NCBI GenBank assembly: GCA_965235115.1
Contig: OZ249439.1
Span: forward strand, 12,276,001 to 12,340,000
Direction of reading: 5' to 3'
Length of the DNA stretch: 64,000 bases
From: Laetmonice hystrix
Lineage: Eukaryota
Part shown: piece after piece, positions 2,938-62,101 of the stretch
Numbering within the stretch: the first letter of the stretch is position 1
Layout: each line of letters begins with the position of its first letter
Program-made: the position numbers and the translations under genes
The notes under the pieces: model-generated
Seen by the model: the letters and a program-made list of their open reading frames with translations, nothing else
Told to the model about the DNA's origin: nothing
Databases searched by the model: none

Positions 2938-3115
2938 GTGCACCAATTCCTGCAGCTGATGAAGCATGAACGTGATGCAGATAGCACGTCCTCGGGCGAG
3001 GGATCCAACACAGACAGCGGGCGTGGGCCCAGTGAGGAGGGTGACCGCGACCACGGCCAGTCGAGGGACCAGGGACCACACGGAGCGCACGGCCACTCCC
3101 AACCACACAACACCC
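2938..3115 (+). CDS. Pcdh: Protocadherin-like gene A, conserved cytoplasmic (penultimate) exon
   Basis: Acceptor ctgattacAG at 2936-2937 with an in-frame TGA just upstream, so the frame opens at the splice site. Perfect donor GTAAGT at 3116. 178 nt, phase 0 to 1. Encodes VHQFLQLMKHERDADSTSSGEGSNTDSGRGPSEEG...HNT, 26/35 aa identical to the exon at 62101-61960 with many synonymous differences. DADS..SDSGRG resembles the protocadherin cytoplasmic CM1-type motif (recalled, not searched). Confidence 0.9.
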
Positions 3116-5499
3116 GTAAGTCACACATTGCACACACCCCAACTTCGCAAAGTCGGCAAGAAATACTGCTGGAAGAACAACTATTTGCTTAGTGTTACCT
3201 TACCAATAGCGGATCCAAAGGGAGTTGTTCAGACCCCCCCCCCCCTTCAGGTTATCTCCTGTTTTCAGTCGAGTTTTCTCTTTTTCGATCTCGTTATTTA
3301 ACTTGTCCGTTATCCCTGTGGGCGTTTCCCCCATCAAACCATCAAATAATTGAGCCATCGCTGCCTTACGGAAATAATCTAAAAAGGATTAGACAAAATG
3401 TGATATTTAGAATAATTTGGTTAGACAACAGTTCTCCCTAGACGTGTATGGCTTTATCAGATTGACCTTTGGTACCTAGCCCTAGACAACACAACTGTTA
3501 TAGTATTATGGGGCACAACACGACACTTTGCTGTAACTGTTCCGTTAGGAGAGCGATTAGGTTAGTCAGGCGTGTATAATGATACCTATAAATCGACGCC
3601 CACCTATTCATGCACGTGTGTAACATAATATTTGTCAGCATGAAGAGATTTCCTGATAGAATGTATAGTCAGCGAGTTTGTTATTAAGTTTCTGGTTTCA
3701 TAGTTTTTCGTCAGTTCTTTAGTCGTCCGTGCGTGCGTGGATTGCGTAGGTAGGTCTAGATAATATCTTCCGTTATATCGCTGTATGATATAACCTAATA
3801 TGTCGAGTTTGTAATGGCAACATGCATTATTATATTGTAAGACCAAAATGTACTTTCTTTAACGGTTTTGACTTATTAAAGCAAAACCTGGTTGTCGTGA
3901 CAGATATGAACGTGGGATACGTTGCTTTCTGTTGTTGACGAGACAAGACGCTATATTGTTTGGATTGCCACACATTGGTGGAGGGGAGGAAAAGTGAGAG
4001 AATTTCATTTACAAGTCGGGCGGGCTGTATACGTTTATATCTCGTTTCATTCTCAAACCTATGATTTATGTAGAAATAAAAGTCGTCTGAAGGACAATCC
4101 GACAAGCACATTATAAGGAGGCAGTAGTCGTTGACGTGAGGTATTGCCCGACGTAAACATCCGACCGACGCCACTTTCTTCTTGCCCCAGTTGTATTCCG
4201 GAAAGCGACGCTCGTCGCCCGGCCGCCTCAGCGTCTCCTGGTCGGTCTGGCCGGCGCTTGTTTTGACACGCTTGGCTAATGGAGGTCAGCCAAAGCCGGC
4301 TATCATATTTGATTCATAGTTGTGGTAGAATCTCGTCGTTTCTTGGGGGCCAAAAGTGAGCTGTTCTCTTGCGATATCGTCAACTGTATCTGCGGAGGCA
4401 TGGAGGCGGCATTATCAAGACGCCTTGGCCTGGCCACCTACGTGATGCCTGTCCATTTACCATTCGGGCGATGCACGAGACACACGCCGCAATCTCAGAG
4501 GCACCCAGGAGGGCATCTTACATTTCGTCGATTCAGAGATAACTGCCACGGGTGACAACAAAGAATAGCGTCTGTTACTGTTAGGTTTGACCAGAGGCAT
4601 GGGTCTGCATGGCAACGGTAAAAGTCAGTCTAGGGGAGTGTGCATGCAATGTCACTGTGGAGCGGCCGAGCAACAGAAACTATACAACAGGTGCCATTCA
4701 ATACTAGGATTAAGCATAGTCAACAGAATTTTGTTATCGTATTTAAAAGATATCACTGTGGAAGCAAAATTGTGACATTGCTGGAGATAATTAAATTATA
4801 AATACAATACAATGGTGAAATACTTCCTGCGAACAATGTTAGATAATTTAAATCCATAAAAAACATATAATTTAAATCCATAGAAAAAACATATTCGTCC
4901 GTCTTATGACAAAGCCAAGTAATATGAATCTGAAACAGTCTCTCTCAGAACTGACTCTAACAGTAAATGAGCAAATCCGATGTAGTGGCTCCTCACAGCA
5001 CCACGCCTGGGCTAATTGCTCACAGGAGATTCAGCGCCTTTTGATGTCCAGTTTCTACTGCCAGCATTGCGCAGTTTCTCCCTACACGTTCTTCTTAGAG
5101 CGCAACAGGAAATATTTTGGCGTCTCTTTTAGACATCAGTCGCTGGTTATTCCTGACGAACAAAAATTGTCCATACTAGCGGTAGTTGCCGGAACTACCG
5201 CAGTGCTATTTGTCGTTTCGTCTTCACAAATGAAACGTAAGAAATGAAGGAGTGCCAATTCCGGCTCCGGAAATGGAATAAGTTGTGCCCGTGTTTGCTT
5301 CGGCCATACGACTGGGTGACAGCGTTTGTGCTATAAACGCGTGACAGTGACTTCTGAAGGTCGGCCATAATAGATACACTGTCCTTGTGCAAATCCATGC
5401 CCAGGCTCGAGGAAGATTGATATGGCGCATCAAAAGTCGTGATTGGCAAGACGACAGGTCCTAACCCGATTCAACAACTGCACCGATAGGAAAAACTTT

Positions 5500-5537
5500 G
5501 AAGTGGCGCGGAACGACTGAAGTGGCGCGGAACGACA
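5500..5537. repeat. 19-bp tandem duplication
   Basis: TGAAGTGGCGCGGAACGAC x2. Confidence 0.85.
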
Positions 5538-6145
5538 GCCAACTTGGTGATTGGAAGTAATGCGCGGAAAAATTAAGTCGGCGGTGCATTTCGATTACGT
5601 TCTTTGCCTTGGGTCCTTTGTACTATGGATCCAACCTATCCATGATATGATGCAACTTTACTCTTTGGTTCAGAAGCTGTGTATACCTAACTACCGAGTA
5701 GTATGAACAGAGAGATCCCTGATGGAGCCGCGCAATTAACAGTAAACTGGAGGACAAGAGGTTTGCCAGCTGAGTGACGCGTCAATTACATTAATCAGAG
5801 GCGGGAACGAAAACAAACTAAATGTTACGGAGACCAAAGTGATTACCCTATACATCTGATCGACTGCATGAATGGTCTTTGTTTGGGACAAACGCCTGAT
5901 AGAATGAGACTCCTGGGCACAGGTGCTTGAGGACGGGAGCGATGACATTATTTCACAGTGTCCATTGTACCGACTTGACAGGCTTTAAAGGTATGGGTGT
6001 ATCTTAAGTCGCGATGTTTAGACAGGAAGGTGGCTTGACTGCTAAGGGCAGTATAGGTAGAGAATGAAAGATTGTACGGATTGCCTGGACGATTGACTGG
6101 TTGTCCCTGGTCATGGTTGGTTGGCGACTTGTCGGCGGAACCCAC

Positions 6146-6164
6146 TCGCGCCCTCTGGCAGAGT
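6146..6164 (-). promoter_or_regulatory. CTCF-like binding motif
   Basis: Minus strand CTGCCAGAGGGCGC, 1 mismatch to the core. Lies in the last intron of gene A. Confidence 0.4.
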
Positions 6165-8128
6165 CGATCGGCCGAAGGTCGTTCGTCAAAGAGTACGGTT
6201 GCGAGCGGGCCACAGACGACGGCATTCATTGGCTGCCTCGACATGAAGAGTAGCCAGACGTTACGATCACGGTGGTCTCGGTGGGGTCTCGCGAGAACCC
6301 ATCAATCACAACGTGCCGTCATGCTGTTTATAGCGTCTGTCCTTGACGTTGTCACAGGGACAAGTTGCCATCTGGGGATTACACATTAACCTCTCACCAG
6401 TACCCTCTACTACCCTGTTACTCGAAACCGGTGTACTACTATAATATTTAACTACAATATGAGTGGTGTTTGCATACAGCAGTAGCAAAACATAGTCCCG
6501 TTCGAACGTTTCAGGTCAACATTTATATTCCTACGAGTAATCAGTGGATGATAATAAGCCTTTCCTTGATGAATAGATGGGGGAGATGAGACCGCTGTGA
6601 AGACAGTGGGAGATGTGCCCAAGAAACATTAAGATAGTCGTAAACTGATAATGATACCACGGGACCATTATCAAGGCTCGTTTGACCTTCGAATGGTGCC
6701 ACCCAGAAGACCCATATACACATTCATGAGGTAATTCCGCCAACTGTGGTCGTTTGGGGTGAAAGGGTGCCCAGGTGTAGGGAAATCTACCGACACAAAG
6801 CCAGGCGACCCTCTTGAGGTAAACACCTCGGCTAATAGGTTGTCTGAATATTGGGACGAGGCGACAAGTATATAATAAATCTATTCAAGCAAACTAGTCA
6901 GATAAATAAAGTATCCATGAACGGCTGTCGGGGTCAGTTTATCAGGTGTCCCCGAACTCTCCTCCTCCATCCTCTGGCCATTCGTTGCCGTCCAAACATA
7001 GAAGTTTAACCTTTTAAAACAACCTGAATTTTCATCGATCAGTTTCCACTGGCGGGGCGTTGTTGGATAAAGGCTACCATTGTTTACTGGTTGAACAGCT
7101 AATCTCTTGCTTTCCTCTGCAGTGTTTTTCAGAAGTAAATTCTGTACCGGCGCAGTTCAGTGCCCCAACAGCGCATCGATTTTTGCGAGAGCGCACGTGC
7201 AGTATAAGTTAAATTTAAAGAGCGATTGAAAAAAGATGTATGGTCAGCAGAAGCTTTAGGAGGAGCAGACAATATATGGCGCCGTAAATACTGCAAGGGG
7301 GATATGTATCCGGCCTATCCAGCCTGTGCGTATCCTTGTACAATACACCGGTTCTATCTATAGTCCCCCGCAGCATTAAGGTTCAGTGACGGGGCAGGAG
7401 AATAGTCATATTACTTACGATTACATAACCAGTTTGCCAATTAAAAGCGTCCAATTATTCTACAGCTTTTCTTTGCCGGACAAAAGTATCCGTTTAAAAA
7501 GGTCATTCTGCCAGCTGCAGCACATTGTTACGTCGTGCTGGTCACACCTCCTGCTACAAAGCCCCCCAGCGGTGGCATTATTTTCTGGGTCTTCGCTCAT
7601 TAAGGAAGGGGTGGGGTTGACTTTCTCCGGACCCCTGGACTTTGGGATGGGTGGAGTGAGTGGGGAGTGTGGGGCGCCAAACTACGTGGTGACGTTATCG
7701 AACCCACTCACCTGTCCGCCGGGCACCGGGTAACTCCACCCTAATCACCCCATTACGGTGATGGATGGCGCGCCAGGGTGTGACGCTGGCTATGCCGGAT
7801 AGCGGCTTCTCCCCCACCCCCGAGGGTTCTACCCCTTCACCCTACACCCTGTCACCACAGGACGGAGACAAAGACCGTCTTCGGGCTCTTGTCAGCCGTG
7901 ATTACGCCTCTTTAAAGTCGGTAAATTGTAGGCGACCACGAACACCAAACATGTAGGGCCGGGTGTTGGGGGCGGGGGGCTATGTTAGCCCAAGTTACAC
8001 AAGGGTGATATCAGCTGTCAGCAGTGATTGATGGAGGTGCACACGTATTGTAAGCTCGTGGAACACTCCGCGGTACCAGTCGTGTTGATAATGACACACA
8101 CTCATTATTCCAATGTGATTGGTGCTCG

Positions 8129-8408
8129 CTCGAGTAACTTTCTAATGTACTAGTCACCGATGACTCGAGTAACTTTCTAATGTACTAGTCACCGATGACT
8201 CGAGTAACTTTCTAATGTACTAGTCACCGATGACTCGAGTAACTTTCTAATGTACTAGTCACCGATGACTCGAGTAACTTTCTAATGTACTAGTCACCGA
8301 TGACTCGAGTAACTTTCTAATGTACTAGTCACCGATGACTCGAGTAACTTTCTAATGTACTAGTCACCGATGACTCGAGTAACTTTCTAATGTACTAGTC
8401 ACCGATGA
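8129..8408. repeat. Minisatellite, 35 bp x 8 (perfect)
   Basis: Unit CTCGAGTAACTTTCTAATGTACTAGTCACCGATGA, identical copies, no spacers. Confidence 0.97.
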
Positions 8409-9468
8409 AATCTTCACATGCAGTCACACCCATTCTCCTGCTCCCGATCTTACACTCATTCTTCTGGGGGTGAGGGAGAAGAAGTTACTTGTCCTGGAGA
8501 AACCCCCTAGTTCCCTGGCAGTGAGGGAAACCTTACAAGGGGATATAAGAGGGTCAATTCGGCAAGGAGAAGGGAGAAATCTGCTCCAGATTCGGGGATT
8601 TACCCCCCTAAATCCCTTGAACCGTCTCTGGTATCCTTCGCTGACACACAGCGATTTATTGTTGCAGTCTAACCTGTCACTTCTATCTGAATTATTTTGG
8701 GAGAAAAATCCAAACACTCCACTGTACAACAGTGATTTTCTGAAGTTTATATAGACCTAATTATCAGTGCACAGAAGATTTGCCAGTCTATTCCCCCGAG
8801 TTGCTATCCTTATGAGAGCTATGATCAATGAGAAATATGACAGTTTAGACATTCCAATTCCTCTTTCACGTCACGTGGAATTATAGTGAAAGGCTCGTCT
8901 TAGTCTTGGATGCCAAGGTTAGGTGAACTCATACATTTTTTAATCTCACAGGAGAGTTATATATCTGAGAGGGAGGGCCGACACGCCCATGATGTAAGGA
9001 ATGAACAATACGATGTGACCGTACAGCATTTATTTAAGTGGGTCTTACGCACAGGCGCCACAAAACATTTTTCCTGAGAGAGTACAGCCAGGAATTATCT
9101 TTACGTGGAATGGGACTAAAATCTGATATAGGGACGTACCGGGGAGATACAAACGCTAAAGCTTTCCTGTAATCTATAAATTATTCATACACTCTGTTGC
9201 CCTGCGCATTTTCAACGCCACTGGTCTCATGGGTTGGAAACTTTACTGTAGGCCTTGATATTGCTACGATGTGTCGAATAGTATTAACCATTCTCCAGCG
9301 TAGATGTTATGTGTCGTATTACCGAGTTGTATTAACGCTTTCTTCTAACCTCACAATTAGGCATGCCTTCATAGTAATCCAGCATGAAGGGAACTCTCAG
9401 AATTCAGTTTCAACACCTTCTTAACGATTTCTTATGTTTGATTTGAAATTGAAATATTCCTTAGGTAA

Positions 9469-9926
9469 GGGGTCATCTCAAAAGTTCACACGTTTTTTCT
9501 AAATTAAATCAGTTTAATTTGGAGCCAGACCACCACCCCACGCCTATCTTAAAGTGTGAAAAACAATGGCTGAAAAATAGATGTACAATTATGATAACAG
9601 TCCTTGAATACCCCATTTATAATAGAGACCTGGAACTGTGTATTAGTGAACAATGACAATCAATCTGTTTAATATTGCACCAATGCTTAGACTCTAGTTT
9701 CAATATATACGAAATACTGCAGATGTATCTGATGCCTAGAAACTAACAGTTTTCAATTTCTTTGTTCATATTAAGTCCTTTTGAATTAGTAATATTGAAA
9801 TTTTATGAACTGATATGCATTCAACTTTTTCCTTTTTTACAAATTAAACTGGGCCTCAGACTACCACCCACTGTTTTAAACTGATTAAATTTAGAAAAAA
9901 AACGTGTGGACTTTTGAGATGGCCCC
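9469..9926. mobile_element. PIF/Harbinger-type MITE (458 bp) in the last intron of gene A
   Basis: About 50-bp terminal inverted repeats (GGGGTCATCTCAAAAGTTCACACGTTTTTTCTAAATT... / ...AATTTAGAAAAAAAACGTGTGGACTTTTGAGATGGCCCC; 3 substitutions plus a 2-nt indel). Flanked on both sides by TAA, the canonical Harbinger target duplication. No ORF inside. Confidence 0.85.
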
Positions 9927-10175
9927 TAACCAAGGCATAAGTTGCCACATGTGAAAGTGACTAGAAATCTGTATTGACCAAGAACTTCAACTTGTTGCAT
10001 GCTTGGTGCCGGACCTTGGTGCCGGCCCTATGACCATAGAGTGTGTATAATACATGGATGTATTCATGGTAAAGCCTACATTTCAGCCACCTTGGCTGAA
10101 ACCTGTGACTATTGCATGTGTTATCTTTGTGCCATGTCTAACGCCTGTGTGCCATATCTGTTTGTGTATTTGCAG

Positions 10176-10876
10176 TGGGTCGCGGGGTAACAGCACGTCC
10201 ACCCACGAGGGCCACGGAGAGCTTCGGTGGTGGCCACACGCCGAGCTCGGTGGTGGCTACCCAGGTTGGGGTACCCCAGCCACCGCCGCCACCGCTGCAG
10301 ACATTCGGGGCGGGCCCGCTCGGGCCTGGCCCACACGGATCTGGTCTGCACTGCTCCAGCTCTCCGTCGACCCATTCGACGCCCAAGAGGGTGACAATTG
10401 CCCCTCATGCTCTTGTTGACCCTCCTGGAAAAACGGGTAGTTTAATGCGTGCTGTGCCCGCCAGGGTAGTCAGCACTGAGCATGGACCTCACCGGACATA
10501 CGGGTACCTGCCGGCCAGGGACCCTCTTTCACATCACCCCTACTCTGGCACAGACAGGGGGTATCATACTGTGAACCCTCGCGGGGGGAACCCCCACCAA
10601 GTGTACCCTAGTGACCGTAGCCGAATGGCCAATATGCCACAGACTTCTAACAATTCAAGCGAAGCCCATCAAGTACATTCTGCGACACTCTCACACCCAC
10701 TACACCATCATCCAACATTACCACACCAGCCTTCCTCTCAAGGCTCGCAAGGGTCACAGGGGTCACAGGGGTCCCAAGGAGGCAGCGACACAAGGAGTGA
10801 CTCGTCGTCTCTACAAAGCAGTTACGCCTTACGATTACAAGAAGCGGGCGAAATATCCAAAGACGTTGTTGTATGA
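10176..10876 (+). CDS. Pcdh: Protocadherin-like gene A, terminal coding exon (Pro/His/Ser-rich tail, SQG repeats, C-terminus KDVVV)
   Basis: Acceptor tttgtgtatttgcAG at 10174-10175. The phase-1 start joins exon 2938-3115 in frame (C+TG = Leu). About 233 open codons, the longest non-repeat ORF in the window. Ends DVVV*, matching DLVV* of the paralog. Contains LQTFGA (WIRS-like) and PPPPP. Confidence 0.82.
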
Positions 10877-11802
10877 ATATATACTAATTAAATGTCTTGT
10901 GACTGACGGACATGGAAGGATGCTCTCCCAGCTACAGCAATAAGGGCGCCACGGATTGGCTGCTGTCGTTCTTCAGCCGGAAGTGACGTCATATGAGTTC
11001 GGAGGTCATTGCGATGGTAACCTCTCAGTTCTTGGATGACATAATTATTTGCTGCGTCTCGGATTACTTGATATGGCACGACAAGCATTGACTGAGTCGG
11101 CTCGTTAATCTAAGCGTAGATTATCCTCTTGCGGTTGACATCCGAAAATGGATGCCTTTCAGGCTGTGCATAGGACGTAAGGTCAGAGACCCCGTGAAAT
11201 TCTATAATATCGTTGTATAAATTAAGCATTTCGAAAAGTGTACATATATTGAGGATTTATAAAATCATTGTGTTTGTTGGCCATGGGGCGTTAAGGGGGT
11301 GGGTCAGCATGAGGGGTGGAAGTTTTTGCCCAAGTGGCGCTGCTTGTAGTGCCCCCAGCTCCTGACGTTAGCGGATACCTAATCCATGGCTGTCGGCTGA
11401 GTACAGTCAATCCTTCATCTGTTTATATCGTCTCGCGGGTCTCAGGTCATCGTCTGGCCGGTTCCCTGTCTATAATATGAAACGTTTCGTGATCTCACGT
11501 GTAACCTAACAAGACACGCTCATTCATTAGTTGTCATTTGATTATTGATATCCGGGTATCTATTTCTACGCCAGCATTGGTCACGTCACAGAGTCAGAAT
11601 ACTTATTTAATCAAAGTGACTGTAATATAGGACGATCATATGAGTGAATGATCAAAGTGCGTGGTTAGAATCCACAGAAACCCCATATTAGGGTTACAAA
11701 ATGTATATTGTAACCGAATACAGAACGGGCTACGTGGATATACGAATACAAATGGTGCACCGGGAGAGTCTGGCACTGTAACCGAAAATATGATACAGTA
11801 CA

Positions 11803-11860
11803 AATAAAATGTAAATCTGTGTATTTATAATGTGTAAAGTGTGCATAAAACAAAAATAAA
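11803..11860 (+). terminator. Candidate poly(A) signals of gene A
   Basis: Two AATAAA hexamers (11803-11808, 11855-11860) about 0.9-1.0 kb after the stop, in an AT/TGTA-rich 3' UTR-like tract and followed by GT-rich sequence. A TGTACATA Pumilio-type element lies at 11239-11246. Confidence 0.45.
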
Positions 11861-26208: not shown

Positions 26209-26855
26209 TGTTAGTATGTTCACCGATGAAAATTCATAACCGCTATTCAGTATATTTACCTTTGCATTAATGCCAGAAGAAAATATTACGTTGCCTGTAA
26301 AGCACTTCACATATCCTCTAATTAATGAAGTTTTCTATATGCGTTCGGTTGATTGCAGTCTGCAGACTGTAAGCTTTCAGAAACGTTTATTGCAGGCCTG
26401 ATGTATACAACACTTCTATATAGGCTGAACATAGAACTAAATAGTGTAGTCTCATAGTAGTGCATGTCTATTAACTGCAGACCAAATTACACACTGTGAT
26501 GTTAATCCGACGCCTATTGTCTATATCTGTTGAAGACCCTTGCTGTGTGTAATGAAGCTGCAGTCTGGCTATAGATAGTGATGTTGTTGGACTTCTTCCT
26601 GAATGCACATGCAATAATATCATTCGTTTCGTTTACAGGGGAAACATACCCAAAGCGTCCTTGTACATAACATTCGTTTTGCATGGACCTGTCTGTGCTT
26701 TGGTAACTTGGTGCATAACCTGATGATAATTAATCTAGCTCGAACATGCGGCCTCTTTAAAAGATATACACGGTGAAATTATATGATAAAACATTTTATC
26801 TACAGATATGGGTGTGTACTGCATGGTAGAGATCAAAATATTTATGATTTGTACT

Positions 26856-43744: not shown

Positions 43745-44364
43745 TTACACCACCAAGTCTCTGAAGAACAGCTCATCGATCTCCTCACACAAGTCATTGG
43801 GATCGACGACGTAACTGCCTGACGTCGTCGTCGACTCCACGTCGTCAGGAATGGGTTCAAGGATGTGCCTGACGTGTGACGACCCCGGGCCCCCATGCAG
43901 TGCCTCACTCATGTCAGCACATGAGTAGAGCATCCCTCCCTCGTCGTCAGACACCTCCGTGCCCTCCGACTCGTTGTCACTGTGGTAGCCATGCCGGGGG
44001 TGACCATTGTAATATTTCCGCATGTAATTGGCACCAATCTGACTTTGCGGGGTGACAAGTTTCGGGAAGTGATCTCCACTACTAAAACCACGTAGCCTTC
44101 CCTTCTGTGGCATGCCGGCCGTGTCACCCGTACACGTTTCACTAGTTGATGGATCCGTCTTTTTCAGGAAGTCATTCGATGGGGACGTACTCGTGCTGTA
44201 GTTAGGAGCAAACGTGCGCATAGATGTCGGTTGACTTGAATAGCTGTAGTTGCTTCCCGTGAAGCTCTGGCACGGCAGGTTCGGCACAACCTGCACGCTG
44301 CTGTTGAAGCTGTTGTCAGCCTGTATGGAGTTGCCACGCTGACTAGGAGCCTGGTGCGACACCC
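43745..44364 (-). CDS. Pcdh: Protocadherin-like gene B, terminal coding exon with conserved STTTSGSY..EIDELFFRDLVV C-terminus
   Basis: Acceptor tcccttctgtctccAG|GG. Phase 1 joins exon 62101-61960 in frame (G+GG = Gly) across a 17.6-kb intron. About 206 open codons to TAA at 43747-43745. The C-terminal block matches my recollection of mollusc/annelid protocadherin termini (TTTSGSYxxDxxxLCxEIxxLFFxDxxV). Confidence 0.9.
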
Positions 44365-50300: not shown

Positions 50301-51457
50301 ATATAAATAAGGCTTTAGGACATAATCTGTGTAATGAATTGGACACGGTGCCTTGGGCCCTACCTTTACGACTAGCCAATCAGGGCCATTAATCACCTAA
50401 CACCTTCGTGTCCGCCGCCCCATCAACATTTCTTACATGTCTTACAGTCAAAAACTTTTAACCAATTTCTCTTCATTTCCAGTTCCGGGACTGAAATATA
50501 CCTCGACTCTCAACAAACTCGTGTGATGTTATTCAGAGAGAGAAGGATATGGTCTGTAATAAACAGATATAATGATTTCATTGGTTTCGACTCTGTCCAA
50601 AGTAGGGTCAGACTGAGGCGGTAACAAGGCATTCGTGATATGTTTGTTGTTCGAAGGACAGTATATGTATTATCCTCGAGTTCATGAATACACTTGCCAC
50701 ATCGCTTCCAGCCGTGCTATATCATTACTATATTTATAAAGCACACAATGCCTTGCCCCAGGGATGTGGTTTGGGACGGCTGGTTTTTAACACTGACTCT
50801 CTGGGACTATTCCTGGCCGCCATGCTCCAGGCTGGTGGAGGCCCAGGGCCTGGCGCTTGCCGACATGGATTCAATTCCGTTTGAAGCGTCACATGTTAGC
50901 CAGGTTCACTATCGGGTCACTCCGACGGTCGACTGACCTGAGCAAATGGAGATAATTCTTCAGGATGCACCCTGGAAATTGAAAGGGACAGTATTCAACT
51001 GCCGACATTTCCTGATGGGCTGAGATGCAATTTATGCCATTGTTGGATGAAGTACCTAGATTGGCAAGGCCAATGTGAGCGCTCCGGTCGGCTTGTATTC
51101 AGGGTCAGGACAAACAAGCTTTAAAGCACTACACATGGTGCTCATTTCAGTCCAATCCCCATCAAGTCACCTCCACAAACAGACCGGCACTGAGACCCTG
51201 TATCTTACCAACAAAACGGCAAACACTGCCCGACACCAGAGGTCAGTGAGCAAGGCTGGCACACAATGGTCGGGGCTGGGTATCAGTTCCCGTCTGTCTG
51301 TAATCACAGGATCCTGCCCACACTGTCCACAGTCACTGACCACACAGATAGTTTCCTCAACTAACACTCAGGTTGAGACGCGGTTAAAGACACTTGGCCC
51401 TGTTGGCTGTCTTCCTCTCGTTCCAGTCAGATGCCTTGGCATTGTTGGGAAACCTGC

Positions 51458-51476
51458 TGCCACCAGAGGGGACAAC
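51458..51476 (+). promoter_or_regulatory. CTCF-like binding motif
   Basis: TGCCACCAGAGGGGAC, 1 mismatch, but at the normally invariant core C. Confidence 0.3.
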
Positions 51477-52355
51477 CGTCAACTTACAACCGATCTGTTC
51501 ATTGCCCAGAGGCAATTAATTGTTCATTTGCCATCCCTCCCCGACAGGCATCAGTGTGCTCATTAGCCAAATAAAGCCTGGCCGAATGTTCCTAATACAG
51601 CAAGACAACCGCTGCATTCTGATGACTCCCTGCTTGCTCATCTGTGATTGACAAACGGGGCACAGATTCGCTCAGATTTGGGCACTTTATCAACACCAAG
51701 CAGCCATGACTCTGCCATGACCTACGGGTCAACCGGTTCATTTCACAGACCACCCCCTTGTAAAGCCTCTGAAATTACGCAGTCACTGCTCCTATTCTCC
51801 TATCTTGGTGGCCGTAATAGATTCTGCTACTTACCACCGCGTTTTCCCATTGTAAATCTTTGCAAAATAATGCATTGCCCCGTTTTCGGCGAGTGAGCCT
51901 CTTGAAGCCAACTGAAGGTTTCCTTTGGGGCCTGGTGAAAGTGGGATTATGTTCTGGGTGGGCGCATCATTAATGTGTGCCGGCGGGCCGGGCGGGCGGC
52001 GCTAGGGTGACAGGTGTAACAGTCATTGTTGGCCTACTCACTATCATATATACAGGGGTGGCCACGTGGAAAATTGTGGGCACGTCGCTTACCAACCACA
52101 CACCTGCACTGGAGGCCACTTCAGATCAACATTACGGCCTTTTAACTATTATCCCTCTGATGGATTTACACGCGTAACCGCCAAAAGGTGGGGCGCTAAA
52201 AGCTACCTGGATTTCCTACACCATTAAGGCGTTTTAAAACATCAACATCACTAACATCAAAGCAGTAGTACAAAAGAGAGAAGTAATGTAAAAATCTGAG
52301 ACGTGGCCACTTCAGATAACATCAAGATATACACGGTGTTGTTCTTACAACACGT

Positions 52356-53200
52356 CCCGAACATCTACTGTTTGGTGTACTCTTTCTGTCACCCACAGTC
52401 CCGTACATCTACTGTTTGGTGTACTCTTTCTGTCACCCACAGTCCCGAACATCTACTGTTTGGTGTACTCTTTCTGTCACCCACAGTCCGTCCCGAACAT
52501 CTACTGTTTGGTGTACTCTTTCTGTCACCCACAGTCCCGAACATCTACTGTTTGGTGTACTCTTTCTGTCACCCACAGTCCCGAACATCTACTGTTTGGT
52601 GTACTCTTTCTGTCACCCACAGTCCCGAACATCTACTGTTTGGTGTACTCTTTCTGTCACCCACAGTCCCGTACATCTACTGTTTGGTGTACTCTTTCTG
52701 TCACCCACAGTCCCGAACATCTACTGTTTGGTGTACTCTTTCTGTCACCCACAGTCCCGAACATCTACTGTTTGGTGTACTCTTTCTGTCACCCACAGTC
52801 CCGAACATCTACTGTTTGGTGTACTCTTTCTGTCACCCACAGTCCCGAACATCTACTGTTTGGTGTACTCTTTCTGTCACCCACAGTCCCGAACATCTAC
52901 TGTTTGGTGTACTCTTTCTGTCACCCACAGTCCGTCCCGAACATCTACTGTTTGGTGTACTCTTTCTGTCACCCACAGTCCCGAACATCTACTGTTTGGT
53001 GTACTCTTTCTGTCACCCACAGTCCCGAACATCTACTGTTTGGTGTACTCTTTCTGTCACCCACAGTCCCGAACATCTACTGTTTGGTGTACTCTTTCTG
53101 TCACCCACAGTCCCGAACATCTACTGTTTGGTGTACACTTTCTGTCACCCACAGTCCCGAACATCTACTGTTTGGGGTACTCTATCTGTCACCCACACAG
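52356..53200. repeat. Minisatellite, 44 bp x about 19, in the gene B intron
   Basis: CCCGAACATCTACTGTTTGGTGTACTCTTTCTGTCACCCACAGT. Two units carry a +4 CCGT insertion; the last units are degenerate. Confidence 0.97.
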
Positions 53201-55297
53201 TCCCCCTCTTGAATCCCTGTCAGCGTCGTCGTCGTCGTCAAAGGTGACACGTACCCTCTGACAACGGCCCCTGCCTGTGGTTGTGGTCCCAACATCGCGT
53301 CCAATGTAGTTCATTCACTCAGTATACACCCATACAAACTCTGTCAAGGCCAAATCATCATTAACAATGGCTATACAAACCGATCCAAAACTCATGATTC
53401 AATAAAACCATCGCTCCAAATCCGTGTCATACAATCATGTGAATGAGGTCGGAATTTCTTACCCAGCTCAGCCCCCTGTGCACTCAAAGAAACTGACTGT
53501 GACCTTTGCTTCTAGCACTTCTGGGTGCATTATAAAGGGATAATATGACGTATAATTGATCTCTTCAAGCTGAATTGTTATCACAATGCTTGCCACTTTG
53601 GCAGACACTAAATGACCTCGCAAAGGTACATCTCTCCATGACATAAAAGCTCCTTCTGCCGCCTTTAGGCAAAGCTTTCTTTGCTGGGATCATATATACG
53701 CAACACCCTTGGCAAGGATATCTGAATCGTTTTTGTGTCTCATAACTTAAAGGTAATGCACACAGAGACAATCTGCAGAGATACACACAGCTGCCAGCCC
53801 CTCACAGTGATCAATGGGCGAGTCGTAAGGCGTACCGCGCGGGTTGATGCTGTTATGATCATACAGTCATGGATCAAAAAATTATAAAACTGAGCCTTCC
53901 TGGGTTCACCAGGGACAATGCCAGTGCTCATACAATATTACACAAGGCAAAGGGATCCTTTCTCTCTCCAAAGTTCTCTCTATATACCATGCTTTTGTTT
54001 TTATTTTAACCTCATTGGGTACAACCGCTATTGTTCTCCTCAACAAGGGTCTTTCAATATTATTAGGGTGTATTTTAATACCGACTTAGGTCACAGTTCC
54101 ACCATTCGCTGGAGCTCTGAGTCGAGCCCGATCTATGCCCACCCTCCAAACCCACAACCCGAGAGGTGGTTTTTACCAGGCCAGGACCCCCCTCCACCTG
54201 CGTACCCACATCTCGGACATATGGACCCCACATAATGGCTGCTTACATTTTCCGAAGAGTTCGCAGAAAGCACGGTTAGACAGAATGCCTCCGATTCTGG
54301 TAACATTGCTCAAGAGGAAGGACTCGGGCAGAGTAATAAATCCAGCTGCCAGGTTCGGCCCCGTATTGATACCTCCTGTCGACCCAAACTGTCGGGCTCG
54401 TCCCCCTAAAACAGGCAAACATGGCTGAGCGCGCCGTCGGAGGCCGACACTTGTGGCCAGCCCACCAGACAGCGGGACTCTAATTCCGACGGCATTAAAT
54501 AAACCAAACAAACACAAGAACTCTACAGGGAAATGTCGCCCTGGTCCAGTCCACTCTGCCTACCAGCGGAACCGCCAGCTGCTTTGAGCCATGGCCAGCC
54601 ACGAATCCCGCGTGGAAACTGACCCATTGGGGAACAATTGGAACCACCGTTTGGCGTCTCGGAGGGCTCATCAGCCACTGAGGACCAGTAGAGTACTGGT
54701 TCTCCACCACCGGGTCCCGCAGAGTGGGAAATTGGTCGCAAATAGACGGCTGCAATGGATACATTCCGTGTGAATCTTTGGGGATAATTGTATGAGATGG
54801 CGGAGAGTTGTGCAGATGAAACAGGAAATTAATTTTTACATGAAGCTGGAGATCCGAGTCTCGTCATCTACATCAGAGGAGTCAGGTTTCGTCTGAACCC
54901 CAAATAACAGTTCATTCTATTTCAGCATGTTTAATTAGAAGATGTTCGTTACTATTGTAAGCCCGTTTATGCTTACACTGATAGGAACACGGCTACACCA
55001 GTCTCACCAAGAACTACTCCCACTGCTCTGCTATGTAGCTACTCCCATTGCTCTGCTATGTAGATCTTTTATATGGAGGTGAAAGGGCCCCAGGGCCCGT
55101 CAACAAAACACAGGGCCATGGAATCCCCACAATGCCCGATCACTTTTATTGGTATGCCAAACGCTATTTGAATGTTAAGAGTGTCTGGGGTATGGCTGCA
55201 CGCGGTTCGCGGGGAGGCCGGGGAGGACAAAGGATAGCGGCTGTCTGCGGCAGTGATGAAGAACAGCACTTCGTTACCACGGCTTCACCATTACGTC

Positions 55298-55708
55298 TCT
55301 AACTGGTTCACAGACAACCATTCCTAATGTCGTGGTTCACAGGAAACCATTCCTAATGTCGTGGTTCACAGGCAACCGTTCCTACTGTCGTGGTTCACAG
55401 GCAACCAGTCCTAATGTCGTGGTTCACAGCCAACCATTCCTAATGTCGTGGTTCACAGGCAACCATTCCTAATGTCGTGGTTCACAGGCAACCATTCCTA
55501 ATGTCGTGGTTCACAGGCAACCATCTCTAATGTCGTGGTTCACAGGCAACCATCTCTAATGTCGTGGTTCACAGGCAACCAGTCCTAATGTCGTGGTTCA
55601 CAGGCAACCAGTCCTAATGTCGTGGTTCACAGGCAACCAGTCCTAATGTCGTGGTTCACAGGCAACCAGTCCTAATGTCGTGGTTCACAGGCAACCAGTC
55701 CTAATGTC
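55298..55708. repeat. Minisatellite, 29 bp x about 14
   Basis: CTAATGTCGTGGTTCACAGGCAACCA(T/G)TC. Variants are clustered along the array. Confidence 0.96.
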
Positions 55709-55743
55709 CCCGCTGGCTATGCTGGCCGTGTTGTCGCGCTGTC

Positions 55744-55762
55744 CGCCGCCAGGGGGCCGACA
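55744..55762 (+). promoter_or_regulatory. CTCF-like binding motif
   Basis: CCGCCAGGGGGCCG, 1 mismatch to the core. Lies in the last intron of gene B. Confidence 0.38.
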
Positions 55763-58314
55763 GAGACATCGCTGGAGTTTGGCAGCAGACTGGCCGGGGT
55801 CACGAGGAATGGGAATGCACGTCAGGTATTGGACCAAGAGTTAGCTGAACGTTGCTGATGTCTTTACCCGGTGAGGTTTTACGTAGGTCAAGTCAGCCTC
55901 TAGACATGGGCCTCGAGATTGTCGGCTTCAATATCCGCCAACGTGGCGGGCCTTTTATAGAGATATCCGGCTCTCATTGAACCAACCGACATCTCCATTT
56001 CAATCACACCAACATCTCAACACTGCATCTGGATTCACCTTCCCCAACTCTAAAAAATCTAAATTAAGGCAAGCTTTTAAAATTAAAATATTCCCTCTCA
56101 TGGGTGTAGCAGAACCTTCGCCCCTCCAAATGTGCACGACTGGAATGTTAAAGTAAGGGCTGGTTTCACACTGGAGGACAAGCTAGCAATCACAGTACAA
56201 TGGTCACAGTACAGGCGCAAAGCCAACCTTATTAAATTATCCCACCAATCCCTGGGCCGTCCTCCGACCTGTAGGCACGGTCCCATCCACCTAATACACC
56301 ATAAAGTATCTCTGGTCAAGTCATACCAACTTAGTGGCCCGCACCTAAAGCATTGCTAAGGCCGGCGTTATCCAATTAAAAGGGCCCGCCTTATTCCACT
56401 TAGTCTCGGGCCCAGGCCGGAGCGCCCTATCCGGGATTACCGGCCGCGCTGCGCGATCTGATTTGTCCGGTCAGATTTACTTAGTCAATTCCTTGCTACA
56501 GCTGCCTCTGACACGGCCATTATGAGAGCAGAATGGCAATTTAAGGAGAGAGCAGGGCTTGCCCTTTACACTGCACGGGTCACATGGGGTGTACCCTTCT
56601 CATCTTAAGGAACAGAAGAGGTTAAGATTTCCCAATATCTGCAGTAGACGTATGCATTGCCTGTTGCTGTGGCAACCTCATATACCATGCTTTCTGATCG
56701 TTGGTACCAACCTCTCAGACTCCACACCATTCCGGCACCAACCTCAATGTCAGCCTGTCAGCCCCTTTCAGGAAACAAAACACTGCCAAGACTAATGCAA
56801 TATGGCGAAACTGCCCACTGAACACCTTGTATGTCACCCTGGAAGCCGGCACGTTGCTTAGACTGACTCACTGAATATACTGCCTCGTGTCACCCGACCG
56901 ACAGCTAACTCCCCTGACTCCTCCCACCACACTCGTCCATGTTTCTTGTAAGCCAATCATTTTATCTCAATATGGCTTCTCCAGGTCAAAGGTCATTAGG
57001 CAGATGAACAATTCGGTAAGATCAGAGTGAACCATAGATGCCATTATCTCAACAGGCGTCATTCATCACCTTGATCCAATCCACTCGGTGCCACGGGCCC
57101 AGTTTGGCCCCAGAGAGCCGCTAATCCCGTAATTCATTAGCTTGATGGTGCTCAGATTGACATTTTATTGGCCTAGGTTCTATTTCACTCCCGACCTTTA
57201 TAGGCTATTTCTGACCCGAGATCCTAACACGTATGACGATGTGGCAACTCTAACGATCAAACACCTGCCATGTCTATCAGAGGACCCCTAATTAATCTCA
57301 CTCTACCTTCTCGGATTATTTCTGGGCCTCGTGTGAAGGGTACAGTGATCGTGTACCCAAGTGGAGGCATAGTGAACGGACTGCCGGAAGGACCGGCATG
57401 CTGTTCGCGACGTTCCGGCCAATGTTTCTCACTCTGTTATCAGCGTCCTCTTCCAAACGACACTACCAGGCAAGTATTGTCGTTGATAAAACCAGCCGCT
57501 CCTCATGTGCTGGCATTGATTGCCTTGTGTCATTACGTGCGGCAATAACAAGTGATAGTTCTTATAATTGCTGGTCATAAATGATGACAAGACAGTGTTA
57601 TGCTTTGAAAACCATTCATAATGAATAAGCTTTCCTGGCTCAACATTTCTGCCTACTCAACAGGCTTTCATTCCCAAATCATGGAGCTAGGCACAGAAAA
57701 GGGATTTTGACATTTTTAGATTCGATTCCAATTATACTGGCATTTTTTGAAATGTTGATATCTCAAGGGGCTGTGTTTATTAGCGATACCTTTATAAAGA
57801 CGCCGACTTGACGATAGTTCACTCGCAGATCTAGTTACGATAGGGAAGTAGGCAGGCGTTCCCACGCTTTGGAGAAACACTTCAACGATATTTCTAGGAC
57901 AAAAAGTGAAAATTCTCTGGAAATATTTCACAAGCATATAGATGTGAAGAGTCTCGACTAATGACCTGATATCAAAGGTAACAGCTTACACATCTATACG
58001 TTTACATCTAACACTGCATGCAACCACCAAACGAGATTCACTCCTTAATTAAGGCTGGCCAAATTAAAAATGTCGAAATGTCAAATATGGAACTAAGCCC
58101 TCGCCCGGATGAAACATTGCTAGCCCAGAGTCTAAACATTCAGATTCTGTAGATTAGCCATTCTCTCCCTTTCTGCCACCCTGCAAAGAATGATCTGCAT
58201 CTCAACTTTTCATACTCTCTGTCATGCTCCTTCCGCTGTTCGTCACCTAATTTGACTTTTTTGGGAGGTGGGGGGGCTACTCCTTGTAGATATCTCCACA
58301 TGTTGTTAGATAAT

Positions 58315-58471
58315 CAGGGTTGTCGTCTGCAAGTTTACTGATATCATGGTCTAGATCTATGTCCCCAGAATTTGCTAGTCGCCAACTGGGCGTGTGTTCT
58401 GTAAATGCCTAGTCGCCCGGGCTCATTTTTAGTCGCCTCGGTCGACCGGTCGAGTCCAAACGCCACCCCTG
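58315..58471. mobile_element. hAT-like MITE relic
   Basis: CAGGGTTGTCGT / ACGCCACCCCTG ends (10/12 match) and three internal TAGTCGCC motifs. No TSD. Confidence 0.4.
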
Positions 58472-61363
58472 CACAAGTTTTCCGAATTTTTCAATGTCAA
58501 CAGGATTTCCAAAGTCAATGTCAGTTTAGGTTTTCTTTAAGACGTAGCAGCCCATGAAAATGTCATTGTCCCTGTTTTCTGTCTTTATTCGCGGAACCCT
58601 CTGGCCTAATTAAGTCATTGATTGCATGCAATGAAGCCACTTATAATAGCCTTTGTCTAAGTAATCGTTAGCCAGCCGTAATAAAGGTGTTCTCGGACAT
58701 GAGCCGGAATCAGTGGAGACGAACTAATGTCACCGAGACCGGCTAGGGTCACTTTACGTATGTATACACAGTAACACCATGGGAGCACACCCTACTGCTG
58801 TAAATGGTCTTCACACACTCCCCGGCTGACGAGCTCTTCATTATGGAAAATGTAGCCCTCAGCCGGCTCCCAGCTCCCCGGCCAAATATGTTCAGCTTCC
58901 TTAACGAGTGAAATATTCATGCAGAATTCGGTGCCTCGCCACCATTCCAGTCAGCCTTGTAAGACATCCAACTTGTGGATTATTGAGAATCATAAATATT
59001 ATCTCGGCTTATTATGTGAAGACTGATAACCCGGGAGACGCTATCGTAATGATTGACAGATCCTTGTGTCGTGAGAAGGGAGCCCAAGGACTCCCCTCCA
59101 TTTCCCTTGAAGAAGTGTTTGTGGGAGAGTAATTGTGCCTGGCTTGCTCCATGCAGCTGCATGCCAACTATTTGCATGCACGTGACCCCAAACAGAACAT
59201 CCCCGGCGGACTCCCAGCCCCGGCGTGGGGGCGCGAGTCGGACAGCTGATTGGCTATTCACCCTCAGGCCTGCCACGCCTATGTTGACCTCCTCTCCCTC
59301 ATCAAAGTCTTCCATTCATAATCCAACCTCTGTAGCCTAACTTTGTGCAAGGGTTCAAAAGCTACGTTGTCTGTTCTCACTTCCTTCCAGACATCAGTGC
59401 CAACAGTAATCATACAAATTCAGTGTGGGCAAAAGTAAGTGTCTGGTGTGACCACAATGTCAATATCTGAGCAAAGAACAACTTCAGCCGTGACAAGAAG
59501 TCGTAAGAAGTCAAGAAGGCCCCCAACAAGTCACCACTGGAACTTTTTTCTTCACAATAAGTGAAAGGCTTTCCATAAAGATGGAATAGATTAAAGAAAA
59601 TCTGTTCCTTATACAAATACTGTGCCGCAAACTTTCACGGGATCTTACTATAACATGTCCTGGCCGACCGTAAATAGTGCCCAGACAACTTGAAGGTGTT
59701 CTGAAGGTCACAAGGCAGACTTTGGGTCGGCGACAGTGCTGAGTTTGAAACAGAGCAAGTTACGGACTGAGTGAAAAGTGTCCATGAGAACACATCTACA
59801 TTGTATATGGATCATCATGTATGGATTCACCGACGGCCGTAACATCTAGTAAAGAATGGTAGTAAAATACCCGAGCCATTATACATGTCGGAGATTCCTA
59901 CGTATCACTATCACAGCCGTTAGGCCAGGCATTGAAGATCCATGTTACACGATATGCACAGATCTAGGATAATAGAGTGTGTGATGCAGATGTTATATGG
60001 TGTGTCGGCCTAACGGATTTCGCTAAGATTCATTTTCACAAAATACAAGGAAGACTTCAAATTGAGAGATTGTGATGAAAAACAAAGCACATCGTACTCG
60101 TTCTTTGAAGTTTTCCACGCTTTTATCGTAGCGTATGTTCACACTATCCGAAATATAATGGGGGTCACCTTGGTATTAACGTTCTATAAACTCATGAGAA
60201 TGAAAGTGTAATATGTTCAATAAAACGTGAGGAAAGTAGATAATATCCTTATCTTGATGAATGATGTTCATATTTACAGCCCTCCGCTTATCCCATACCA
60301 ACTCAAAATAAACACTAGTGGCATCTTATAAACTGCTGCCGTGCGAGCCACAATGCAAATTATTTGCGTTTCATACTCATTAATTGAGGGCTTAGCTGGC
60401 TGGCGGTGGAAAAGCAGCATTATTAATATTTCCTTAGTCGACTGAATCCAATAATCCTTGTATGTACATAGAGAAGGCGATTTCCAATTTGTCACTGTTT
60501 ATGAGAGGAACTGTTCCTAATGTGGTGGCGTGGTCCGCGTGGTGGAGCCACCACTGCGGCTGGCCCCCAGGTCAATATCCCCACCCGTCACCTCACCCCT
60601 TGTCCGTGTCACCGGTGAATCCCCAGCCCCGATTCCACTTTTTTCCAAGGAGAGTAGGCCCCTAATCTGGCCATCCATCACCGCCTGGCATTAACTGACA
60701 AAGGTGCGTGGTGGCCATTGTGGCCAGGCCACCGTGGCCACAATCACAATCTCATCCCAGACTCTATGCCCCCCTCCTTGCCACGAGCCATTCACCCAAG
60801 TGCCAAGTGAAAACACCCCTACGAAAACACCCCCACACCCCCACCTACCACTCGCTAAAGGAGCGGCACCTCGAGTGGCGCTGGGTGGCGTATGTAAGAG
60901 ATACGGCACAATTTATTCCCAATCTCAGGCCCAGTCTGAAAGGCAGCTCGGGGACCCCGGCTCATTGCCATAATGCACCCGTGTATTGTCCCTTCCCCAA
61001 GCTGTCAATCACGACGGCGCCCCTTCCGATGGCGGCTGGAGGGCGCCCACCGCTGGTCTTTGAGTAGAAACCTCTTCCTGGTCTGCACAATACGCACGAG
61101 AAGTGCTGATGATCTGTCCATCTGAGGGGGCTCTCAACTAATTCTAATAACAAAAACACTGGATCTATTTCTCAGAGCCTTAGGCGAATAGAATTGGGGA
61201 CGAATAGCCTACATTCTTTTTATCAGTGGAATTGCCATGCCCTCCATCGAAAGGAAGGCATTTGTGATGGAACGAGCATTGTCGATGGTGTATACATACC
61301 TCAGAGAGAACAGGGCAAAATATGTATGATAACACGGAAACATTTCATATTGCCAGCACTTAT

Positions 61364-61530
61364 TGTCAATATGGGCGCTACAGCAAGCTTAGCTGTTAGA
61401 GATAGCCAGGTTAGTAGTATACACAAAGTGAATTCTGAATCACTAACAGTGTGTCAATATGGGCGCTACAGCAAGCTTAGCTGTTAGAGATAGCCAGGTT
61501 AGTAGTATACACAAAGTGAATTCTGAATCA
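61364..61530. repeat. Perfect 79-bp direct duplication (period 88)
   Basis: TGTCAATATGGGCGCTACAGCAAG...GTGAATTCTGAATCA at 61364 and 61452. Confidence 0.95.
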
Positions 61531-61959
61531 GGCTGCTCAGACTTGACGGGACGTTTTATATAAGCGATAAATAGATGTTGCATTATCTAAACGTTTCTCC
61601 TTTCGTCCAAACACTGAATCATTTAAAAGATAAAAAGTAGTAGCTTATCTTTAAGCTCTCTGATATAATCCATACAAGGGAGAATGCCACGACTGAATGC
61701 TTAAGTAATAAAACTCTTCTCGCTTACAAAAGAAACCTATTATTCGATGAGAACAATAGTGGGCGAATACACTCGTGAATCTTTCTGTATGTGATAACCA
61801 GCTTCCAATGACGGGACAAGATTCCAACAGTATTATACGGTTTTCTTACCATTCACTGACACTGAATGTGCCCACAAAGGACCCCCCTTTGATTAAGTTA
61901 AGGCTGTTCATCATACATATAAAGTAAGTCCCTGAGGAGGGCTGTAGAATGGCACCGAC

Positions 61960-62101
61960 CTGTATGGTGGGAATCGTTGTGGCTCCTTGGGCCCTCCCCC
62001 TCCTCGCTGGGGCCACGCCCACTGTCCGTGTTCGAGCCATCACCGGAGTAAGCACTATCGGCATCAGGATCCTGTTTCAACATCTGCAGTAACTGGTGAA
62101 C
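61960..62101 (-). CDS. Pcdh: Protocadherin-like gene B, conserved cytoplasmic (penultimate) exon
   Basis: Minus-strand acceptor ttgattgtattgtacttgcAG|GTT and donor CAG|gtcggt. 142 nt, phase 0 to 1, the same phases as the gene A exon. Encodes VHQLLQMLKQDPDADSAYSGDGSNTDSGRGPSEEGEGPRSHNDSHHT. Confidence 0.9.

Follow-up and report, generated by a model that had tools for sequence, protein, structure and literature searches.

A 64-kb stretch of an annelid-type genome very probably carries the 3' halves of two convergent, non-clustered protocadherin genes

Introduction

In the vertebrate clustered protocadherins (alpha, gamma), variable exons are spliced to shared constant exons. The locus described here, a window of 64 kb on one chromosome-scale contig (C4) of an annelid-type genome, raises the question of whether a comparable arrangement exists outside vertebrates. 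An initial annotation recognized protocadherin 3' regions at both ends of the window, in mirror image, and proposed that they are shared constant exons fed by arrays of variable exons lying outward on either side. Such a system would mean that the variable/constant protocadherin cluster had been invented a second time, independently and outside vertebrates, a notable case of convergent evolution in neuronal self-recognition. Our analysis leads to a different reading: the window very probably contains the 3' halves of two separate, convergent paralogous genes, which we call A and B, encoding non-clustered protocadherins with seven cadherin repeats.

Results

Each gene was modelled with four coding exons, fully open in frame, giving proteins of 1271 aa (gene A) and 1238 aa (gene B); either gene may have additional small or non-coding exons. 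The exon anatomy of both genes is demonstrated, as are their frames, homology, copy numbers and synteny. The features are as follows, in window coordinates unless marked C4.

C4:12246982-12249744 (window -29018..-26256), + strand: gene A exon 1, outside the window, 29 kb upstream
C4:12272810-12272983 (window -3190..-3017), + strand: gene A exon 2, 174 nt, 58 codons, outside the window
1..2937, + strand: 3' part of gene A intron 2 (5954 nt in whole; exon 2 ends at window -3017)
2938..3115, + strand: gene A coding exon 3, 178 nt, phase 0 to 1 (splice sites, translation)
3116..10175, + strand: gene A intron 3, 7060 nt, from donor 3116 to acceptor 10175
10176..10876, + strand: putative gene A terminal coding exon 4 with stop (acceptor, phase, frame open to the stop at 10874-10876)
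10877..43744, no strand: convergent intergenic region, with presumed 3' UTRs, three N gaps, tandem repeats and CT-rich simple sequence
43745..44364, - strand: gene B terminal coding exon 4 with stop (acceptor, homology to the Pcd11x tail)
44365..61959, - strand: gene B intron 3, 17,595 nt
61960..62101, - strand: gene B coding exon 3, 142 nt, phase 0 to 1 (splice sites, translation)
62102..64000, - strand: 3' part of gene B intron 2 (7291 nt in whole; exon 2 at window-equivalent 69393-69623)
C4:12345623-12345393 (window 69623..69393), - strand: gene B exon 2, 231 nt, 77 codons, outside the window
C4:12404730-12402007, - strand: gene B exon 1, outside the window, 64 kb upstream

The two short exons from which the annotation had started, at 2938-3115 on the plus strand and 62101-61960 on the minus strand, are indeed homologous, with AG/GT borders and phase 0 to 1 in both. 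Gene A exon 3 lies between the acceptor ...gattacag/GTGCAC and the donor ACACCC/gtaagt and encodes VHQFLQLMK...DSGRGPSEEG; its gene B counterpart lies between ...tacttgcag/GTTCAC and ATACAG/gtcggt and encodes VHQLLQMLK...DSGRGPSEEGE, so that both products carry an acidic, serine-rich DSGRGPSEEG motif. Over the first 35 codons we reproduced the reported identity of 26/35 aa, with 14 of the 26 identical residues coded differently and a nucleotide identity of 81/105. The match is not due to chance, since the two exons find each other with E = 7.5e-10 in a six-frame search of the whole genome. Gene A exon 3 is also 71% identical to residues 973-1009 of Platynereis Pcd11x.

Exon 3 is the third coding exon of its gene rather than the first after the ectodomain exon. 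The intervening exon 2 was found through its homology to a segment of Pcd11x; it has clean splice sites and a length divisible by three in both genes. Since it is absent from one homologue (P0010), it may be a cassette exon. Every junction leading into exon 2 or exon 3 is phase 0, and the exon 1 donors fit the acceptors downstream.

Upstream of each 3' region lies a 2.7-kb exon 1 that encodes a signal peptide, EC1-EC7, a membrane helix and a juxtamembrane segment, with ectodomain and helix uninterrupted in one large open frame that runs to a phase-0 donor. This frame spans 951 codons in gene A (C4:12246955-12249807, + strand; donor CAG/gttagt) and 956 in gene B (C4:12401893-12404760, - strand; donor GAG/gtaagg); no other cadherin-type frame is present within 100 kb of the window on either side. 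Pfam finds Cadherin_2 (E = 9e-16 and 8e-19) and six to seven Cadherin stretches (E = 4e-103 and 3e-111) in the two genes; the window does hold protocadherin 3' regions at both ends. Each protein has one signal peptide, one membrane helix and six DxNDxxP linkers about 108 aa apart. The number of repeats is put at seven on the basis of these six inter-repeat linkers and of an alignment to EC1-6 of PCDH10, which leaves one extra repeat before the membrane.

A terminal exon follows each exon 3, as had been claimed, at 10176-10876 (+) and 44364-43745 (-), with good acceptors and frames that fit the phase-1 junction. In gene B (acceptor tctccag/GG; split codon restored as G+GG = Gly), exon 4 carries the C-terminus conserved in this family, TTSGSYVVDPNDLCEEIDELFFRDLVV, and exons 3 and 4 together match the C-terminal 269 residues of Platynereis Pcd11x at 41% identity (E = 1.4e-39). 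A search of the genome with gene B exon 4 gave no second match. This canonical tail occurs in this genome in gene B and, weakly, in one other paralogue, and in no others. In gene A (acceptor tttgcag/TG; split codon restored as C+TG = Leu), the tail has diverged and ends in ...SSYALRLQEAGEISKDVVV. Its assignment as exon 4 is a probable one, drawn from its phase, its position, its open frame and a few short motifs held in common, namely LQTF and, with P0020, LMRAVPARVV; it aligns with the family tails in multiple alignment only, and it too is unique in a genome search. Pairwise similarity between the two terminal exons is not significant (E = 2.8), and they can be aligned only by way of further family members.

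Gene A is an old duplicate with a diverged terminal exon. Its C-terminus is degenerate (SSYALRLQE-AGEIS-KDVVV), with most of the conserved C-terminal motif lost; this loss, together with the lack of a detectable homologue of its terminal exon in the genome, could mean that one member of the pair is decaying or no longer functional, gene A being the most plausible candidate. However, all four of its exons are open and have canonical splice sites, the 1271-codon frame and the calcium-binding linkers are intact, and its exon 1 is 94% identical to the orthologue in one related species and 82% identical to that in a more distant one, which indicates purifying selection. We therefore regard decay as very improbable, and pseudogene status for gene A as unlikely. 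The proposal of an old duplication under purifying selection holds for the pair as a whole: in the related assembly the orthologues are 94% (A) and 92% (B) identical, versus 55% between A and B.

The outward-facing, tail-to-tail layout was also upheld, with gene A on the plus strand, gene B on the minus strand and their stop codons facing each other across 32,868 bases. This interval had been described as 33 kb with no recognizable gene, and we agree: its 75 open frames of at least 75 aa yield low-complexity Pfam matches only, and no Rfam family is found between the two genes; a scan of this kind would overlook genes built from short exons. Candidate poly(A) signals are present. Three N gaps, at 19304-19896, 38174-38435 and 38441-38606, are flanked by CT-rich simple sequence and touch no exon; being intergenic, they leave the reading frames unaffected, and as they lie downstream of both genes they are unlikely to hide ectodomain exons. 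Spurious long ORFs arise within gene B intron 3 from two tandem arrays (44 bp x19 and 29 bp x14).

The three gaps between the genes do offer an opening for a scaffolding artefact, in which the tail-to-tail order would have been created across the Ns. Two other assemblies speak against this. In the closer one, the A and B orthologues lie on one 386-kb contig, with an exon 1 spacing of about 151 kb compared to 152 kb here, and in the second, more distant one they are likewise convergent on a single contig. Since the convergent order recurs on one contig in each of the two, the layout is real, and we consider an artefact exceedingly unlikely. The same observation establishes synteny in related genomes, which had been suggested as a check.

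We then considered whether exons 3 and 4 could be constant exons joined to several promoter-driven ectodomain exons, forming an independently evolved set of clustered protocadherins. Phase is no obstacle to such splicing, given that exons 2 and 3 are both entered in phase 0, and a paralogue does lie on the same strand 150 kb upstream of gene A. That paralogue, however, comes with an exon 3 of its own (C4:12124379). When both gene models were searched with tblastn against 264 kb (the 64-kb window plus 100 kb on each side), the eight exons of genes A and B were recovered and nothing further, so that the flanks contain one ectodomain exon each instead of the arrays that had been envisaged. Genome-wide, no ectodomain exon was found in the interval that separates gene A from the 12.09-Mb paralogue, or for about 1 Mb past gene B; moving outward from either supposed constant region, one thus meets a single ectodomain exon before reaching another gene or covering a megabase. 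The ectodomains contain seven repeats instead of six, and neither exon 3 nor exon 4 of either gene has a Pfam match at E <= 1, the clustered-protocadherin constant-region families Cadherin_tail and Cadherin_C_2 included. The cluster reading is refuted at the genomic level, and we give it hardly any credence. What stands is the alternative that the initial annotation had itself allowed, two ordinary single genes, each with one exon 1 and its own exons 2-4.

The wider family points the same way, with a 1:1 pairing of ectodomain exons and exon 3 copies. There are 21 paralogous exon 1s in the genome, all on C4 and spread over 26 Mb, and 15/21 have their own exon 3 copy 7-64 kb downstream on the same strand. 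The 'constant' exon is a multi-copy feature of the family, duplicated along with each gene. Of the neighboring pairs within 250 kb among the 21 paralogues, six are convergent, three tandem and one divergent. Four of the convergent pairs consist of mutual closest relatives, and the A/B pair, which keeps its orientation in two other species, falls in a clade of three. It is conceivable, if improbable, that tail-to-tail pairing is maintained, for example through a shared 3' regulatory domain or through transcriptional interference by which any one cell would use one partner or the other; this would amount to a two-way choice, resembling protocadherin isoform choice in function only.

The splicing of genes A and B is predicted from the coding exons as modelled. 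Reads over 58001-64000 come from four sequencing runs of a single sample, none of which is listed as RNA. Three of the runs cover introns and exon equally and are therefore DNA, while the fourth touches only a repeat at 58432-58471 and leaves gene B exon 3 uncovered.

Discussion

The closest known relative of gene B is Platynereis dumerilii Pcd11x (UniProt A0A2H5BFB8; P0003), which it matches in a single HSP over residues 9-1241 of 1241 with 52% identity; gene B is the counterpart of Pcd11x. Like gene B, Pcd11x and its spiralian relatives (automatically named protocadherin-1-like, -11 X-linked-like or -20-like) have seven repeats. Pcd11x and gene B share a KKEVSF juxtamembrane motif, a PQACSSML...PWxLTQRELE segment, DSGRGPSEEG and the C-terminal TTSGSYVVDPxDLCxEIDxLFFRDxVV; gene A has all of these features as far as exon 3 and differs in the diverged terminal exon. 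The conserved tail of gene B is common to annelid, nemertean and mollusc proteins. A profile search with the tail returned 301 proteins, and among ten that were looked up, the nine with names were all molluscan; a search for homologous proteins with the Pcd11x tail gave spiralian matches only.

With the vertebrate non-clustered delta-protocadherins, genes A and B share one large exon for ectodomain and membrane helix, a few small cytoplasmic exons and the status of stand-alone genes. The DSGRGPSEE of A and B may resemble the vertebrate DSGKGDSD-type motif. The delta1 group (PCDH1/7/9/11) has seven repeats and delta2 (PCDH8/10/17/18/19) six, with PCDH20 as delta0 (PMC7339444, PMC6769022); the seven repeats of A and B agree with delta1 and delta0. 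The best matches among solved structures include PCDH10, 18, 19 and 17 as well as PCDH1, and over EC1-4 PCDH1 is outscored by delta2 and clustered proteins, so these comparisons give no one-to-one vertebrate class for A and B. As regards the cytoplasmic motifs CM1 and CM2 of delta1, PF08374 reaches 16.9 bits in gene A, against a cut-off of 26.3, and has no match in gene B. The CM3 motif of delta-protocadherins is RRVTF, a docking motif for PP1-alpha (PMC6339937, PMC7339444). Neither RRVTF nor R/K-V-x-F is present in the tails of A and B; the aligned position reads KRVTIA in gene A and RNISF in some molluscs, with nothing comparable in gene B.

As in the vertebrate clustered protocadherins, the distal tail in genes A and B is encoded by small 3' exons that come after a large ectodomain exon. 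The difference is that each set of 3' exons goes with just one ectodomain exon, and that there are seven repeats rather than six. Among cephalopods, Octopus has 168 protocadherin genes in dense head-to-tail arrays, reported to be without recognizable tail motifs (PMC6339937, PMC10084454). Both that expansion and the 21-gene set described here are lineage-specific spiralian expansions of separate genes, not variable/constant units; in contrast to the Octopus arrays, the 21 genes extend over 26 Mb, often lie in convergent pairs, and most keep the exon with the DSGRG motif.

By analogy with their family, the A and B proteins would be receptors, probably neural, for calcium-dependent homophilic adhesion or recognition, with ectodomains that bind in trans through the membrane-distal repeats. 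Their tail motifs may recruit cytoplasmic partners, and the hydrophobic C-terminus could serve as a PDZ ligand; Pfam detected neither Cadherin_C nor any other domain in exons 3 and 4 or in the tail part of exon 1, and hence no catenin-binding domain of the classical-cadherin type.

The locus provides clean four-exon models for two unannotated genes and, in gene B, a cytoplasmic tail with fixed motifs common to annelid, nemertean and mollusc protocadherins. Protocadherin diversification in this annelid-type genome has proceeded by whole-gene duplication, with 21 copies on one chromosome.

Exons of two convergent protocadherin genes

The window, C4:12276001-12340000, carries the 3' halves of two protocadherin paralogues, gene A on the + strand and gene B on the - strand.

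Coding exons in the window
2938-3115, + strand: gene A exon 3 (exon A), 178 nt, phase 0 to 1, canonical AG/GT borders, translates to VHQFLQLMKHERDADSTSSGEGSNTDSGRGPSEEG...
62101-61960, - strand: gene B exon 3 (exon B), 142 nt, phase 0 to 1, canonical AG/GT borders, translates to VHQLLQMLKQDPDADSAYSGDGSNTDSGRGPSEEG...
10176-10876, + strand: gene A terminal exon 4, acceptor completes split codon CTG, frame open up to the stop
44364-43745, - strand: gene B terminal exon 4, acceptor completes split codon GGG, frame open up to the stop

The phases of exons A and B are identical on opposite strands and each is followed by a large terminal exon, as the initial annotation had described. A scripted recount reproduced its figures for their likeness (26/35 residues shared, 14 of them through different codons) and gave a nucleotide identity of 81/105; the two exons also found each other in a six-frame whole-genome search (E = 7.5e-10). 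The stop codons lie 32,868 bases apart, and the absence of a recognisable gene from these ~33 kb was borne out: Pfam searches of the 75 open frames of at least 75 aa between the stops returned only low-complexity matches, and an Rfam scan of the same stretch returned none. All three N runs fall in this intergenic stretch, flanked by CT-rich simple sequence, and so affect neither exons nor reading frames.

We then listed stop-to-stop frames in 100 kb on each side of the window and found a single cadherin-type frame (containing exon 1) upstream of each gene. Both frames begin with a signal peptide, match Pfam Cadherin_2 plus six or seven Cadherin domains (E = 4e-103 for A, 3e-111 for B) and contain one membrane helix and six DxNDxxP linkers at ~108-residue spacing, indicating seven cadherin repeats. 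When three-exon models were aligned with Platynereis dumerilii Pcd11x (P0003), ~60 residues were absent between exons 1 and 3; tblastn with the missing segment placed it a short way beyond the window edge in each gene.

Exons outside the window (contig C4, OZ249439.1)
12246955-12249807, + strand: open frame containing gene A exon 1, 951 codons, 29 kb upstream of exon A, phase 0 donor CAG|gttagt
12401893-12404760, - strand: open frame containing gene B exon 1, 956 codons, 64 kb upstream of exon B, phase 0 donor GAG|gtaagg
12272810-12272983 (L012:6810-6983), + strand: gene A exon 2, 174 nt, clean acceptor, donor GAG|gtacg
12345623-12345393 (L013:5393-5623), - strand: gene B exon 2, 231 nt, clean acceptor, donor GAG|gtacg

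Both exon 2 lengths are divisible by three, and the product is proline- or histidine-rich, ending in PWxLTQR(E/D)xE. The segment is present in Pcd11x and the homologue P0020 and absent from the homologue P0010, so exon 2 may be an alternatively spliced cassette. The four-exon models are open (1271 aa for A, 1238 aa for B), and gene B aligns to Pcd11x in one HSP (residues 9-1241 of 1241, 52% identity), which provides cross-species support for joining the four exons. All splicing was inferred from sequence and homology; four sequencing runs on 58001-64000 gave even DNA-like coverage, with none in the fourth, and no RNA run is among the organism's records. Beyond the donor, the exon 1 frames run on for 21 codons in A (L010:3745-3807, +) and 38 codons in B (L019:2006-1893, -) before a stop. 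Intron retention after exon 1 would be predicted to yield short-tail isoforms, which have been described for vertebrate delta-protocadherins.

One ectodomain exon per gene

The initial annotation had raised the possibility of two shared constant regions, each fed by an array of variable exons, as in vertebrate clustered protocadherins. The genomic layout refutes this. The flank survey gave one ectodomain exon upstream of each gene and no array, and tblastn with both models found no cadherin-like sequence in 264 kb besides the eight exons of A and B. Across the assembly (627 Mb, 35 contigs), a search with gene B exon 1 recovered 21 full-length paralogous seven-repeat ectodomain exons, all on C4 (1.0-26.9 Mb), and querying with exon A, with exon B and with a tail profile gave 13-15 copies of the DSGRG-motif exon (exon 3), all on C4 bar one weak match on contig C3 (E = 4.4). 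Of the 21 ectodomain exons, 15 are each followed by a same-strand exon 3 copy of their own at a distance of 7-64 kb; the paralogue upstream of gene A is one of these (exon 1 at 12094535, exon 3 at 12124379). The genome-wide search found no further ectodomain exon between this 12.09-Mb paralogue and gene A, or within ~1 Mb beyond gene B. The "constant" exon was therefore duplicated with each gene rather than shared; exons 3 and 4 of both genes likewise matched no Pfam family, vertebrate constant-region families included. A and B are ordinary protocadherin paralogues arranged tail to tail.

As stand-alone genes with a large first exon and few 3' exons, A and B resemble the non-clustered delta-protocadherins, and they share their seven repeats with the delta1 and delta0 classes (as defined in PMC7339444 and PMC6769022). 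Solved-structure matches of the ectodomain were PCDH10/18/19/17, clustered gamma and alpha proteins, and PCDH1. Pfam PF08374 scored below threshold in A and gave no hit in B, the RRVTF motif was absent, and delta1 membership is not established. Octopus protocadherins are reported to lack CM1-3 (PMC6339937), and lophotrochozoan protocadherins to exist as separate genes (PMC10084454).

Intronic repeats and variants

Near-perfect intronic tandem arrays
2076-2476: 50 bp x8
8129-8408: 35 bp x8
52354-53197: 44 bp x19, source of three overlapping spurious ORFs (250-314 aa)
55304-55708: 29 bp x14

Arrays of this kind also fill the sequence flanking the window. In gene B intron 3, three DNA runs from the same sample each have one contig that omits a 367-bp element (58105-58471), and the element alone has 4-6x the depth of its surroundings. 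Together these suggest that a multi-copy repeat is inserted here in the heterozygous state. The same intron contains, ~430 bp downstream of exon B, an exact tandem duplication of 88 bp (61364-61530); one run's contig skips one copy, and the duplication may be of variable copy number or a collapsed repeat.

Cytoplasmic tail

A multiple alignment revealed tail motifs common to annelid, nemertean (Lineus) and mollusc proteins.

Shared tail motifs
KKEVSF, after the membrane
PQACSS...PWxLTQRELE, exon 2
DSGRG(G/P)SEE, exon 3
YSxAD(M/I)
TTSGSYxxxPxxLxxEIDxLFFxDxxV, C-terminal

Every motif is present in gene B. The gene A C-terminus is degenerate but retains LQTF, and it shares LMRAVPARVV with P0020; pairwise, the two terminal exons had no significant similarity. 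In this genome, the canonical C-terminal part of the tail profile is matched by gene B only and, weakly, by one other paralogue. An exhaustive profile search returned 301 proteins; of ten looked up, nine were named, all molluscan, and one had no name. The alignment also contains a segment, RNISFSDDSV, conserved in mollusc and nemertean homologues and fitting the PP1-docking pattern R-x-[VI]-x-F; the aligned position reads KRVTIA in gene A, with nothing comparable in gene B. This segment could be a spiralian counterpart of vertebrate CM3 (RRVTF), lost or degenerate in A and B.

Age and orientation of the pair

Among named homologues, the best matches to the two proteins are annelid (Platynereis, Ridgeia, Paralvinella, Capitella). 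In a maximum-likelihood tree, A, B, the 12.09-Mb paralogue and Pcd11x form a well-supported clade, with Ridgeia and Paralvinella proteins outside. In a related assembly, a single 386-kb contig carries the counterparts orthologous to A (P0008, 94%) and B (P0001, 92%), on opposite strands and inward-pointing, ~151 kb apart versus 152 kb here. Convergent orthologues (82% A, 77% B) also occur in another, more distant assembly, both on a single 3.45-Mb contig and on the haplotig of that contig. With A and B only 55% identical to each other, the orthologue identities, conserved convergence and tree together uphold the earlier reading of an old duplication with both copies conserved.

Among the 21 C4 paralogues, neighbours within 250 kb are convergent in six cases, tandem in three and divergent in one. 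Four convergent pairs (14.09/14.31, 15.47/15.52, 25.91/25.96 and 26.03/26.15 Mb) are sister genes in the tree (SH-aLRT 96-100). The recurrence of convergent sister pairs in this protocadherin family is a mildly interesting feature that remains once the cluster is set aside.
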